From the NCBI RefSeq assembly GCF_000150275.1, contig NW_002060945.1, positions 383,872 through 447,871 on the forward strand: DNA of 64,000 nucleotides. The letters are read 5' to 3'. Position numbers and translations under genes: made by a program. This document shows positions 44,501 to 51,900 of this stretch, one piece after another (positions within the stretch are counted from its first letter, which is position 1; each line of letters opens with the position of its first letter). The DNA is from Trichoplax adhaerens. Its lineage: Eukaryota > Animalia > Placozoa. Below the pieces are notes generated by a model, which made no database searches, was not told the origin of the DNA, and was given only the letters and a program-made list of their open reading frames with translations.

Positions 44501-46139
44501 TTGAATACCAATACACTAACAAGCCAGCTGTAAGACTATACGCGTAAGCTAGTGTACGAAAAGTATATAAAGAACTAAGATCTAATGTTTGCAATTATTA
44601 GACATAAATAATTTATTGTTGAGCATATTCGATTTACAGTATGAACGAGTACCGTATATATACACGTATGCCTGCGAAATCTTTTAACGATTATAATTAT
44701 TTGTATTTGAAGGATCACTGTTACAAGATATCTAACTGAAGAACTGTCATCTTACGATAGTATAACATTATTTAATAATAGTAAAGGGCTAAATACAGAA
44801 TTACTTTCGTAGGATAGATCGATTAAGTCTATAGCATTAGAACTTGGTTAGTTATTTACGTATTTTATGTAATCACTTTTACTTATGTACAATTATGTAC
44901 GGGTATATATGAGTATATATGTTAAGAGCTAGTAATAGCCCTAACTTGCAACAAGGGTTGAAGGAGTGCTTTCTAACCTACAGCACACTACTGTTACTTG
45001 GAATACTAGTCAGTTGGTATTCCTAGGCAGATAGAGTTTAACACCGTGAAACCTTCAAACTTTCTAGAAATTCACAATCTAATTTATAGTCAACGAAGCT
45101 GCCGCTTATATAGGTTTCGATACCTAAAATCGGTTTAACTCCATAGCTTCCGATCTTGTTTAGCTATTTATGCATTTCATGTAATCGCTTCTACTTACGT
45201 GCAAATATATATACGAGAGCATAGAAGTATAATAGAACTACTATAACTATAAAGAAACCTTCCTGATTAATCCAATGTTTTAAACTATGATCATTCTTGT
45301 ATTACGGCAATGCCAATCATAGGAAGATACTGAATGTGATACGGTGTGTTGCATATAAAATACTAATGTTAAAGAATAAGTAATAAAAAATTCAGGATTT
45401 CTCTCAATTAAATTAAGTTTACAAGCATTCAAAATATCCGTTGCCTTTCTTCAACCTTGCAGCCTTATTTTCTACACCTGTCAGGTAAGAGTAATTATGA
45501 TATTGGAGGTAAAATAGATCCTATTACAGGATCATAAATATTTGTATTTGGCCTGAAGGTTGCTAAAGAGTAATGTAGCTTGAACATTTTTGCATATTAC
45601 CATATCGGTAGGCTTGATTAGGATCGACTCTTGAGTCAAAATGCTTGTAAGTTCCTCTTTTTGGCCCACTACTAAAGCTTCAATAAAAGTAAAGTAGGTG
45701 GCGTAGTAAGTGGATAGACATATATAAAAGCTTCAGAGTTATTGAACTTGTATATTTCAGGCAATAATAAGATTTAAATCGCCTGAGAAGTGAGGTCTTT
45801 CCAAATGCAAACTCATTCTTAAACATTCTTTTAAGTATAAGTTAAAGTATGATAAAATGTCTTAAAATTTTACATTAAGAATTTTAATTTCTCGTAAACC
45901 TTTCCTTAATTAGATGGATTAAATCCGTCTGTAAGTGGCTAAGGATTATCCACCTTTATCAGAATAAAACTATCTAACCGCCTACATTAAAAATCTACGA
46001 ATTAGATATTATAATTTTATTCTTAAGGGGCCTTCAGTGCATAAAACAATCTACAGGAAAGATCGATTGTATGGCATAATTTCATTCTTTCATATACGCC
46101 CATTTAGTCATTAAATTTATTCAATATTTCAAGATGCCG

Positions 46140-46601
46140 CTGTTCAAAATGCCTTTGTCACTCTGAGTTCATGCACGTTTTCTAATTGTACGATAATTGC
46201 TTAACTGCTTAATGATTATTGCCAAATGATGGCTAGGGATAGTAGTATCGAAATAGCAATAAAACTAAAATGCTGCTTTAATGCTTCCTTCGCTTACGGT
46301 GCATTGATCTATCGGGCAACTACTACTACTATAATGTAAGTCAATTACTTTGAAATAATTAATTTTTCTTCCATATTTAGTACTATCTTATAGTGATTTT
46401 TAGTTAGTTATGGTAGTCACATGAAGCACAATAGCACCAGGAATTTCTTTGTAGAAAGCAGAATAGACTGGTACGCTTAATAAAGTAATTGTAAAAGATG
46501 GCTGCTATGATGAAACCGTTAACTAGTACTATTGATATTGTACATAATATATAAGTGGCGGTAATCAACAACCATATCACGATATGTTTTATATAATGCA
46601 C
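46140..46601 (-). pseudogene. Possible GPCR remnant (TM1-like segment plus a downstream hydrophobic fragment)
   Basis: YILCTISIVLVNGFIIAAIF resembles TM1 (N1.50); a broken hydrophobic segment FSFIAISILLSLAII follows further downstream. Confidence 0.22.
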
Positions 46602-47498
46602 TAATGTGATCCCTAACTCTAGAGTAGAATATTGCAGAGAAATATTTAATTATATTTTGAATAAGTTACATGGCGTTGTTGTAGAGACTTATCAAGGCGA
46701 CGATTTGGTTTTATCTTAGCTGTTTTCAACTATTCTTATCTTGGGAAAATAAAAAATTCTTCTCCGATATATATGCTATTAATAAATAATACATTTAAGG
46801 CTAAAATACGGTGTTGATCTGTTGTGTTACATTAGAGATTTGCTCAATTTTAATCACTCAAATTTTCAGATAGTAGATTGTGAACCTATGGGGTTATAAA
46901 ATCCATTCACTACATCTGTACAAATTTTCAAGTCATCATTATAAAATAACAAACAAAGGATTCACTTGATAAATTAGCAATAGGTAACACAATCACGATT
47001 TCATCATCTTTGTTAATTGAACAGCCAAGTCTACACGCATGTATTTTAATAACGGAGTTACTAATGGTCTATCGAATCGTAAAAACCAGCAACAGACAAA
47101 ATTATTACCAGAGCTTAAGTAATCAATATAGTATTAGCTAATCAAAGATCAATTATCCATTTTGTAACAGTGGCATTCGTAGTTATGGCTTTCTAATGTT
47201 TATAAGATAAGAGTTGCACGAGCCCGAATACTACCAATACAATATCGTGACTTCTATAATTATTCAGGAATCTAAATTACACGTTATCCTTAGAGGTAAC
47301 TCAAGTTATTTCCTCAGGCAAGAACATTTTACCTATGGTTATGATGTTACAGTATAAAACTAGATGACTGAAAATTTTAAGGTAGCTACTGTAACATAAA
47401 AAATTAAACCTCAATCTCGATATCCACGATCATACAATAATAAAAGAGATTATTTTTGAAAAGGGCACAAACTTTAGCTAGTTCAGACTATCATAAAA

Positions 47499-48947
47499 TC
47501 AAATTTTCTTTCTATCGACAAATTTGCGTAATTTTGTCGGAAGAACTCCTGCTGTTTTACGATAATGATCAATTAATTGATCTAAATCGGCAAATTGATA
47601 TTGATCCTCTAAGCTATATATGATGATCACTTCTTTTTCGGTTATTTTTACCTAAATTGAAATGATGAAAATGAATACTATTTTAATATAAATAAACCTG
47701 ATAGTACTTAATGGTAGTATTCCAACAATATTATTAAAGGGTGTTATGTAGTTTTTATTAATACAGACGAAAATATTAATAAGTTTTTATCCATCAACGA
47801 GTACTAGCATTTAATTAAATCATATGATAAATTTAAGCTACGTATAGTACGATAAGAATATTTCTACCTTGGATGCCATTTTTTCTTTTAGGGCTTCACG
47901 ATTCGGGCAAGAGCCGGCACGAGAGCGGATCTTGTTAATTCTATCAGCCTCAGTTTCTATAGGTACTTTAACTAGTTTTGGTGTTCCAATAATTCGGCTA
48001 GATGATTTACCAAACTCCATCGGTACTAGATGATCACCTGCGTTTTCTCGTAAATCCTAAGAAATTAGCGATAAAGTTTCCGATATCACAGGCGCATCGG
48101 TTTAATAATATATCTCATTAATTAAAATTAAGTGATATTATAAATATGCATTTTAGCTTTGTAATATCAATTAAAGAACTACCCTATTCCTTATAACATA
48201 CCATGTAACAATTATTCTAACAGTACTGAGCAGTTAATCATTTCAGATAGTAAAAGTAATATTTTCTAATGTTGTTGTCTATTTTACTTAAGGAGCTAAT
48301 ATTAAAATCTAATTCTGCTGCTATTGAGAATAAATAGTATCATGCGATAACCGGTTGCGACCTTTAAGAATTAAAAGCATCTTATTATAATACAAATAAA
48401 TATAGATCTAATGATATACAAGCATAATAATAATTTGCAATCAGCCTTTCTTGATTAATAGTGGACTTACAAGAACAATTTGAATGTGATGAACTTTCTT
48501 TTTATGGCATAAGGACAATACTAGAGACCCTGGAGTACTTGTGCTTTCGCGAATAAGAAAAAGCCTAGAGGATATCATTAAAAGTTCATAAATAAAGGTA
48601 CCAACTCGTTCCCATGATTAAATCCTATTTACTTGCTAATTTATTTTCCCTTACTTTATATTGATAATTATTAATAATATGCAATTGTGTTTTTAATATT
48701 GATAATTATCAATAATATACAAATATATGTTTTTTGAGAGTTTCCTTTAGCAATTCTTATCTACTGGCTAGTTTAACTTATGTTACAGCTCTTAATATTG
48801 ATAATTATCAATTAATATGCAAATATGTTTTTTAATACTCTTACCCATCAGATGTTCCTTTATCAGTTAAAATATCGACTGCTTGTATTCGGCTGATAGA
48901 AGTATGAAACCATGGCTGATCGTAAGATAAATCTTTCACGGAAATTC
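47499..48947 (-). CDS. SH2 domain exons (48845-48947, 48471-48564, 47499-47651)
   Basis: PWFHTSISRIQAVDIL...DG|LFLIRESTSTPGSLVLSLCHKKKVHHIQIVL|VKITEKEVIIIYSLEDQYQFADLDQLIDHYRKTAGVLPTKLRKFV; the FLVRES-type arginine is intact. Confidence 0.93.
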
Positions 48948-51900
48948 CTTTAATTAAGTAGATCATCATCAGAAAATAAGCTCATCAAAGATTTATTTGG
49001 TGATAGGATTGCAATTCATTTGTAATTATTTTTGCTTACAGCAATACAATTTAAAATTAGTGTACATACTGTATATCTACAATAAAATAAAACCTGTTAA
49101 AAATACCTTTTTTATCTCTTGTAAATCTCTGTAAATAGAACAAATATGTATAAATTAAAACTAGTTCCAAACACAAATTATAAAATTCTCTTGTAAGGTA
49201 AAAGCGTCATTTTGAAATTGAACTACTAGATTATTTGCATTACAAGTAGATGAATAAAGCTATAAACCAGTCTATAGCTAATGAAGTTATCATAGCTCAA
49301 CAATCGTATTCACGGACCGCGACAGTAATAGAGGGGCTAGTGCATTTACATAGTGCTTTGAAATTTTATTTGAAATTAAAAAGAGTTTTACTTACCATTG
49401 TACCCGTTCTTGCTCTAGGTTCTGGTGCATGTAATAATGGGCCAGACAAAACCGGTGAATCATTAGCTGGCGATGAAGGAGTAGTAGCTACTGTATCTTT
49501 CCTTTTACTTAGACCACGCAAGAATGAAAGTGATCTACTCCTTGGTAACTCGCTGGTAGTATGGCACCGCGATCGCTGCAGTATAAGTTAGATAAATAGT
49601 GATTATACGTATATAGAGAATCTAAGGCGTGTTATTAGATAATCGTAGCTTTATCTAGCAATATCTTAAACTTGGCTATAACTTTTAATTTGTTAACTTA
49701 CCGTGGATGCAAAGTCTTGTGACATAACCTCGGGAGAACTTTGAATCATTTCCGTGTAATTTGTTTTTAATTGCTGGCCGTACTATTAAAATAAATTAAT
49801 CGTCAGTCATATTAGCTATAAATTAATTACTGATGCACCCAATATCATGAGAATAATCTTATATTATGTCTTTATAATTGCAAAAGCCAAGCATTTGATA
49901 TTCAAGGTTATTTAAAATAATAAACACACAGATGACAGCTATATTTCAAGCCGTAAAGCAACCCATTTAGTTATTACCTTTCCAACGCGAAATACGCTAA
50001 ACCATGCAAACAACTTCTCAGCATCATTAGTACACAAACTTTTAAAATTCTTAGGATTAAAATTTTGTAAATTTTCCTGAAAATATATTTATCTGCAGTT
50101 AATTTCGTATCTTTATTAATCACTGTACGTATCATAATCACTTAGGATATAATCTTTAAGCTAGGAAACCAACACTTGGACGAATAAAAATGATTTCCGC
50201 TTGATATAGAATAAGATGTTATCAAGCAAATAAATGAATTCATTTGAACTTACTATAAATACCAAGCAGTGATTACTCGGTGCCCCAAAGTGTTTTTTAT
50301 AATTTAATCCATAGAAACAATCTAGTTCGGCAAACCGACAATAACAGCTAGCTGATTCCTGTGATCAAGAATTAATTGTCATCATAATTTAAAATGGAAT
50401 GAAATCTAAATATTACGTTATAAGTTTCGATATTATTATATATACGAAACGCTGAGAACGTTTCCTTTTAGAACAATTGACTGCGGTCAAGGTGACATAA
50501 ATAAAATGTTATTAAAGAAAAATTTCGTTTTTCATTCCTTTACGTATTGACTTGAAAGAGGAAGTACAATACTAATAGCAAAATCTGTCTATCTTAACAA
50601 AGGCATTATGATAGATTTTATTAGGAATGTATTAGAAATTTTTAAAAAGCTATTAGTTGTATAGAACAAATTTCAATACTCTGGGATTAAATTATCATCT
50701 GCCGTAGAACAGAAAAGTTATATCATGAGATAGTTTGTTGATGTTTGTTACCACTGCTACAGGAATAACTTTAATCACCGCCTATTACGGCTTACTTACT
50801 TTAGAGTCTGATTTACCACAAGTATAAATGCCGTCTTTACGCATTATTGCCAGAACTTTTTTCCATTTCTTACCCTCCTTGATATGTACATTGCCTTGCA
50901 ATTCAAGTAAATGAGAACCGCCATTAAAAATATCCTGAGTAAGAAAGTGCCTAGTTACCATAATTACATTGTAAGCGCTTTTACATAAAATAGTATAATG
51001 TTGATTTGTAATATTACCATTAATAAAACTTGACGCAATTTTTCAGTATTCTTACTACCATCACTTTGGGTAAAGAAGGGTCCCAGGCAATCCTATAAAA
51101 TCAGCCCTGTGATTTACTTTTGGAACTTTTTGAAAAAGTACACCTCGTATATCTATATGCAATAGTACCGTCTCAAAAAGATTAAATACTTATCAAATCT
51201 AATCAACAAATAAGTGATATTCAATAATTATACCGCTGGTCTTTTGATGATATCATATTTTTTCTCATGTAAACGAAGAGTGAGTAAATGATTAATCGCT
51301 GTAGATGAAGATTTGCATATATCCAATACAATTTGATGATCCTCTATAGGCCTTTCTAAAAGTATATACGGTAGAAATCAAAATTAAATCAGTAATACGA
51401 TAAAAATTACAGGTGAAAAAACTGTTGAGTTACAAATATCAATTATGCAGCTTATAGATTAGCCGATGAACTTAAAAAGTACATATATAAATTCTAAAAT
51501 TTCTTAATTTGGCAATATAATATTTTAATCCTATATTGCAGTATACTAATTTCTTGTTATATTACAGAAATATTGTTACCGGTACTCACCAATTTTATAA
51601 TCAGGATAATATTCATACAACTGCCAATAAATACTTTCTGCCTGCTGATGTTGGTATACTGCAAGCTGACAAATTTCACTTGCAGGCATGGTCTTTCCGA
51701 ATTTGATATTTTTATTGCAGTTATTTTCATTACAATAGATTTCGTGAGTGGTCTAAATATTTATAATGAACAAAAACCAATTACTCGCCTACCTAGCATT
51801 AACTGTATATTAGAGAATCGGATTACGAATAAAAAACAATGTCTAACGCATTAAGTAATTTTTAGCTGAAGAATTAATAAGCTGATAGCTATAACTGACT

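Follow-up and report, generated by a model that had tools for sequence, protein, structure and literature searches.

Grb10 and Grb14 are textbook examples of proteins that inhibit the insulin receptor as pseudosubstrates, and the BPS segment of their family was named for its position between the PH domain and the SH2 domain, where it precedes the SH2 domain in vertebrates. In the stretch of Trichoplax adhaerens DNA analysed here (64,000 nucleotides, hereafter the window), a gene on the minus strand carries a BPS-like motif in an exon of 189 nt that lies among the exons coding for an SH2 domain. The locus raises the question of whether this exon is a genuine part of the gene, and whether its motif is a BPS that has changed its place. 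The reading that we prefer, with a probability of roughly 0.55, is that the SH2 domain is interrupted after strand betaD by an included exon of 63 residues, which bears a displaced BPS-like pseudosubstrate that would act on a kinase.

Exon chain of the gene

Positions 47300-51100 were compared with the contigs of four public sequencing runs in order to obtain the exon joints. Spliced contigs come from X6, a run recorded as an RNA-Seq library, and from X10, an RNA-type run from a different study, while X1 is DNA-like with even depth and 0 splice joints. All the joints of the exon chain were found in both X6 and X10, where CT..AC on the plus strand corresponds to GT..AG on the minus strand. The relatives used for comparison were L001, an ENA metagenome contig, and L004-L006, genomic contigs from three Logan runs of one lineage. 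The genome searched has 105.6 Mb in 1,414 contigs and is AT-rich and intron-rich. The exons are listed below in the order of the gene.

50800-50934, minus strand: first PH-domain exon, 135 nt, 45 codons, phase 0-0 (X6 and X10 joints)
50254-50358, minus strand: PH exon, 105 nt, 35 codons, phase 0-0 (joints; 88% conserved in L004)
49978-50076, minus strand: PH exon, 99 nt, 33 codons, phase 0-0 (joints; present in L004)
49702-49782, minus strand: PH-end exon ...DFAST, 81 nt, 27 codons, phase 0-0 (joints and sequence)
49396-49575, minus strand: linker exon RSRCH...TGTM, 180 nt, 60 codons, phase 0-0 (joints 49702 to 49575 and 49396 to the micro-exon)
49107-49128, minus strand: micro-exon, 22 nt, RFTRDKK plus 1 nt (X6 and X10 contigs)
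48845-48947, minus strand: SH2 exon a, 103 nt, ..QPWFHTSISRIQAVDILTDKGTSD, betaA-alphaA (joints; weak Pfam SH2 match)
48471-48564, minus strand: SH2 exon b, 94 nt, LFLIRESTSTPGSLVLSLCHKKKVHHIQIVL, betaB-betaD, ending ...HHIQIVL (Pfam SH2, E 1.7e-8)
47868-48056, minus strand: inserted exon, 189 nt, phase 0-0, 63 residues (both flanking joints in two runs)
47499-47651, minus strand: terminal SH2 exon c, VKITEKEVIIIYSLEDQYQFADLDQLIDHYRKTAGVLPTKLRKFVDRKKI then stop, betaE-alphaB-betaG, 153 nt including the stop (joint 47868 to 47651)

The micro-exon is confirmed by the contigs of X6 and X10, in which joints 48951 and 49396 are separated by 18 extra letters that together with four ambiguous ones correspond to 49107-49128. 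It adjoins the start of the SH2 domain and is also found with AG/GT flanks in L004 (2230-2251). Further joints in the contigs of X6 and X10 lead from 49396 through the micro-exon to 48947 and from 48845 to 48564. SH2 exon b is in phase 1 at its 5' end and in phase 0 at its 3' end; its ...HHIQIVL end agrees with the earlier note, with the small correction that the exon spans 48471-48564. The block formed by the micro-exon and SH2 exons a and b comprises 219 nt and both begins and ends in phase 0. Five successive exons at 49396-50934 (135, 105, 99, 81 and 180 nt) are all in phase 0-0. Downstream of SH2 exon c, the 3' UTR extends below 47300.

Position of the insert and family of the adaptor

Searches were carried out exon by exon. 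Among the solved structures, the top six matches of SH2 exon b are SH2 domains of Grb7, Grb10 and Grb14, and the best matches of SH2 exon c are the SH2 domains of Grb10 (3m7f_A, 1nrv_A) and Grb14 (2aug_A). Residues 1-30 of exon b align to residues 30-59 of 1nrv_A (Grb10 SH2) and residues 11-43 of exon c to residues 68-101, with the break in the domain at residue ~60, just after betaD. Following the usual SH2 nomenclature, we take ...KVHHIQIVL to be strand betaD and ...EVIIIYSLED to be betaE; with this assignment, the insertion point of the 63 residues is the end of betaD, within the betaD-betaE turn. The arginine of FLIRES (the phosphotyrosine-binding FLxRES) and the betaD histidine are both kept and aligned with those of Grb7, and the weak Pfam match of SH2 exon a covers positions 1-18 of the SH2 profile. 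Without the 189-nt exon, SH2 exons b and c join in frame to give an uninterrupted Grb-type SH2 domain. The proposal of the earlier note that a BPS had been relocated into the SH2 domain near the betaD-betaE loop therefore holds for the presence of a 63-residue insert at this place, as supported by the RNA joints and by conservation, and holds only partly for the identity of the insert as a BPS.

For the exon at 50800-50934, the best structures were the RA-PH units of Grb10 (3hk0_A, E 0.0017) and Grb14 (4k81_A), ahead of RIAM. The single PH and linker exons give no Pfam assignment, being short, and the RA exons were recognised by eye. Since the SH2 exons are closest to Grb7/10/14 and the PH exon is closest to Grb10 and Grb14, the minus-strand gene is classified by its sequence as an adaptor of the Grb7/10/14 type, with a probable RA-PH-SH2 layout.

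Conservation and selection

The 189-nt exon has the same length and phase (0-0) in all three lineages, with 83-87% amino-acid identity between them. Aligned at the DNA level, the three exons form conserved blocks that retain their AG and GT sites, and the introns cannot be aligned. Differences at the three codon positions of the exon number 8/2/23, 12/2/28 and 5/2/16, so that most of them fall on third positions. The dN/dS of the exon is 0.05-0.12 among the three lineages, with synonymous sites close to saturation, and is similar to the value of 0.076 found for SH2 exon c. Read in antisense, all three frames of the exon contain stops in all three lineages.

In protein sequence the 189-nt exon is 87% identical to its counterpart in L004, a value surpassed by the SH2 exons alone (94-97%); the PH exons (54-88%) and the linker (68%) lie below it or about level with it. 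The amino-acid sequence of SH2 exon b is identical in L001 and 97% identical in L004. The 189-nt exon is a used, constrained coding exon under strong purifying selection.

Resemblance of the insert to the BPS core

Two short motifs were annotated within the 63 residues, the BPS-like one in the N-terminal third.

47979-48029, minus strand: BPS-core-like motif LVPMEFGKSSSRIIGTP, exon residues 10-26, putative kinase pseudosubstrate (match to Grb14 376-392)
47904-47927, minus strand: RSRA(G/S)SCP (RxRxxSxP), putative basophilic-kinase or 14-3-3 site (invariant in three lineages except G/S)

The second motif fits RxRxxS and RxxSxP, which we take to be the consensus of basophilic kinases and 14-3-3 proteins. 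Another RxRxxS motif, RSRSLS, is present in the linker exon at 49530-49547 and may likewise be recognised by a basophilic kinase or a 14-3-3 protein.

The Grb14 core given in the earlier note, LVAMDFSGQKSRVIENP, is identical to the sequence in PDB chain 2auh_B. Two longer Grb14 BPS peptides were also compared with this chain; the 24-mer matches it fully and the 30-mer in all but one residue (Ser for Cys in the crystallised chain). The gap-free identity of 8/17 between LVPMEFGKSSSRIIGTP and this core was confirmed, with a BLOSUM62 score of 39 and LVPMEF..SRIIGTP aligned with 376-LVAMDF..SRVIENP of Grb14. This score is the best of 33,983 stop-free windows of 17 residues taken from six frames of the 64-kb window, the next being 28, and it was reached by none of 20,000 ungapped shuffles of the 189-nt exon. 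A gapped local alignment returns the same 17 residues at a score reached by 2 of 5,000 shuffles (P 4e-4), and when the alignment of the three lineages was compared with the Grb14 peptide by hhalign, the result was P 8.8e-5 with a probability of 60%.

The residues shared include those with a reported function. In Grb14, 376-LVAMDF-381 is named as the pseudosubstrate, with Leu376 placed in the active site and with Val377, Met379 and the LVAMDF Phe touching the kinase, all four being reported contacts of the insulin receptor (PMC10780909, citing Depetris et al.). All four of these contact positions (L, V, M, F) are kept in LVPMEF, and the relatives have either LVPMEF or LVPIEF, with the change of M to I occurring in L001. 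The absence of a BPS motif between the PH domain and the SH2 domain, also claimed previously, was borne out, as the exons there score 10-18 (the linker exons 17-18) against 39 for the insert; the linker exon, which with the micro-exon occupies the place of the vertebrate BPS, has a local score of 17 against the Grb14 BPS core and no Pfam match.

The same 63 residues could instead form a real, constitutive and lineage-specific insertion in the betaD-betaE loop that is unrelated to the BPS, its motif being alike by chance or convergence. Such an insert would act otherwise, for example as a phospho-regulated docking loop through RSRAxSCP. Several searches turned out as this explanation would have it. 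The earlier note had pointed to the Pfam BPS model as a check on the 63-residue peptide, and PF08947 gave no match at E<=10 (the family cut-off being 27 bits); run against the six-frame genome, the model also gave no match, and the control genomes likewise gave none. Neither phmmer nor a two-sequence profile recovered 2auh_B from the PDB chains, where only noise was returned. Among that noise, a sodium channel beta-3 subunit (E about 1) was rejected as a match of the peptide. The resemblance covers 17 of about 48 BPS positions, and nothing in the insert is similar to the helical C-terminal half of Grb14's BPS (shuffle P 0.66). The strictest conservation of the insert lies outside the motif, in DLRENAGDH and NKIRSRA.SCPNREA.

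Significance of the motif match depends on the space searched. The Grb14 24-mer found nothing at E<=10 in the whole genome, and by our estimate 211 million six-frame residues should contain many matches of 21 bits by chance, so that significance holds only for a search confined to this gene. Corrected for some 560 coding residues, the P value within the gene is about 4e-3 (a rough estimate). An origin of the likeness by chance has to contend with this value as well as with the shuffle and hhalign values for the exon, with a motif that sits in the sole family known to own it and is otherwise missing from this gene, and with the persistence of the kinase-contact positions across three lineages. 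We consider an insert unrelated to the BPS less likely, and judge that the core of the insert is probably homologous to the BPS core on the strength of the alignment. AlphaFold2 with the exon alone (two-sequence alignment) gave a low-confidence model (pLDDT 67, pTM 0.27) with predicted strands at residues 9-15 and 26-31 and predicted helices at 36-48 and 53-61.

Inclusion of the exon in the transcript

The intact exon described in the earlier note (47868-48056, minus strand, 63 residues) was recovered with exact boundaries, both by translation and by the contig joints. Its acceptor is an AG that lies within a TAG stop and its donor is AAG/GT. Both of the junctions that had been put forward for checking, 48471 to 48056 and 47868 to 47651, are present in X6 and X10 as minus-strand GT..AG junctions, and one contig of X10 carries the linker exon, the micro-exon, SH2 exon a, SH2 exon b and the 189-nt exon in collinear order. 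The exon is included in the main mRNA and is constitutive, or at least predominant.

It could in principle be a regulated cassette that switches the protein between a plain-SH2 adaptor and an insert-bearing form. Its phase of 0-0 and its length of 189 nt in three lineages would allow this, a skip from 48471 to 47651 would restore the Grb-type SH2 domain, and its donor (AAG/GTAGAA) is not strong. The skip joint was not seen in the contigs of X6 or X10, from which rare forms are dropped and a minor isoform could therefore escape. Strong purifying selection and the 87% identity point to a used form, and most exons of the gene are in phase 0-0; exon symmetry being the rule in this gene, that of the 189-nt exon is no sign of cassette use. 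Taken with these observations, regulated skipping appears improbable.

The order of the exons is the same wherever it was found. In X1 a single contig of 3,358 nt spans 47300-50093, keeps the genomic order and differs from the window at five bases, so that X1 cannot just be the data from which the assembly was made. The order SH2 exon b, 189-nt exon, SH2 exon c is common to L001 and L004-L006, and L004 is collinear over the whole series of PH exons, linker, micro-exon, SH2 exons a and b, 189-nt exon and SH2 exon c. The 189-nt exon is single-copy in the genome. Scrambled or trans-spliced transcripts, one of the possibilities raised earlier, are excluded as the main form by the collinear X10 contig, and no scrambled junction occurs in the contigs of X6 or X10; the local misassembly suggested alongside is contradicted by the contiguous X1 contig with its SNPs and by the common order in the relatives. 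An artefact of any of these kinds, including a chance intronic open frame (chance frames of 60-110 codons do occur in the AT-rich window), can be dismissed in view of the canonical joints that flank the exon in two runs, the two contigs just named, and an order, splice sites and coding-type conservation that are the same in two other lineages whose introns are unalignable.

Public protein collections contain very little of the exon. A search of a library of 1.84 billion proteins with the exon peptide returned one match, an ORF fragment of 76 residues, and two ORF fragments (P0001 and P0002) are the only library proteins that contain the exon. Public full-length models either omit the 189-nt exon or are absent from the libraries searched, and homology-guided gene models may skip it. 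The exon peptide had no usable match in the ESM Atlas, and no relative was found in the JGI metagenome contigs scanned.

Possible mechanism and origin

From the motif, its position and its conservation we infer homology to the BPS, inhibition of a kinase, a target for it and a route of relocation. In the preferred reading of an interrupted SH2 domain with a displaced pseudosubstrate, the SH2 domain would dock on a receptor tyrosine kinase in its phosphorylated state, which would probably resemble the insulin/IGF receptor, and the insert would leave the betaD-betaE turn as a long flexible loop. LVPMEF on this loop would then occupy the substrate groove of the kinase and block it, which would amount to a two-point inhibition like that of Grb14 with a different tether point on the SH2 domain. 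The RSRA(G/S)SCP site may regulate the loop. Insulin-like peptides and insulin/IGF-like receptor kinases have been reported for placozoans (review PMC12702675), and a plausible target for the insert therefore exists.

As for the origin of the arrangement, the block of micro-exon, SH2 exon a and SH2 exon b may have swapped its order with the 189-nt exon, possibly through tandem duplication of the two units followed by loss of the outer copies. Such a swap would keep the reading frame since both units are in phase 0-0. Repeat searches around the 189-nt exon revealed no remnant of a recent duplication, as would be expected if the swap took place, as proposed, before the three sampled lineages diverged. 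The full scenario is that of a natural split SH2 domain, in which a BPS module was moved into the betaD-betaE loop via permutation of two phase-0 exon blocks, became fixed across a whole animal lineage and still serves as a two-point inhibitor of an insulin-like receptor kinase. We offer it tentatively, with slightly less than even confidence.

Comparison with known systems

The closest known system is the BPS of Grb7/10/14, as represented by Grb14 with the insulin receptor kinase (PDB 2AUH). The host family is the same by the PH and SH2 matches, and the Grb14 BPS and the insert have in common LV-x-M-(D/E)-F ... SR-(V/I)-I-x-x-P as their core, including the four residues reported to contact the kinase. 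The two differ in position, the BPS of Grb7/10/14 lying between PH and SH2 whereas the insert lies inside the SH2 domain after betaD, and in extent, as only the 17-residue core is alike while the helical C-terminal half differs and the Pfam BPS model has no match.

Two further systems offer analogies. In SOCS1 and SOCS3 the SH2 domain anchors on the phosphorylated kinase or receptor and the KIR blocks the substrate groove as a pseudosubstrate, the targets being JAKs. The logic proposed for the insert would be alike in combining an SH2 anchor with a short pseudosubstrate; however, the KIR is N-terminal to the SH2 domain, the insert is within it, and there is no sequence relation between them. 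The split PH domain of PLC-gamma and the PH domain of syntrophin are signalling domains interrupted in a loop with the fold kept. The split SH2 domain described here would resemble them in having a functional segment inserted in a loop, although in the PH cases the inserts are whole domains and here an SH2 domain has received a segment of 63 residues. A full-text literature search found no comparable split SH2 domain or SH2 domain insert, and nothing on non-bilaterian Grb7/10/14.

In this gene the sole BPS-like motif sits inside the SH2 fold, and the arrangement is expressed, conserved and strongly selected. If the insert is homologous to the BPS and active, the module order in a Grb7/10/14-type adaptor would not be fixed, leaving the BPS module free in its position relative to the SH2 domain, and the SH2 domain would tolerate a large functional insert after betaD. 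Under the same condition, two-point inhibition of an insulin-like receptor kinase would date to early animals, before Bilateria, and the locus would illustrate cleanly how modules can be permuted in nature through shuffling of phase-0 exons. If the motif is not homologous, the gene still has a conserved insert of 63 residues in an otherwise canonical SH2 domain.

Other observations at the locus

The exon at 50800-50934 was found to have the highest score among the exons against the C-terminal half of the Grb14 BPS (33, roughly KEGKKWKK against EEGLAWRKK). This match is probably due to chance and driven by W and K residues.

The intron between SH2 exons a and b contains a near-perfect palindrome, ATTGATAATTATCAAT, at 48655-48812, where it occurs in three copies, each within a repeat unit about 38 nt long. 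In the intron that follows the 189-nt exon, X1 and an unspliced contig of X6 have four base differences in common (47770, 47822, 47824 and 47826). A second allele or strain is common in the public data.

One contig of X10 joins 45705 to 47892 on the plus strand (45676-45705), and the stretch skipped starts with GTAAG and ends with AG. The 30 joined letters (45676-45705) are unique in the genome. Position 47892 was considered as an alternative 3' end of the adaptor gene in X10 and rejected, the junction being a plus-strand GT-AG junction. The joint belongs to an antisense transcript that is spliced and has an exon starting within the 189-nt exon. Because of the stops in its three antisense frames, this transcript is probably non-coding within the 189-nt exon.
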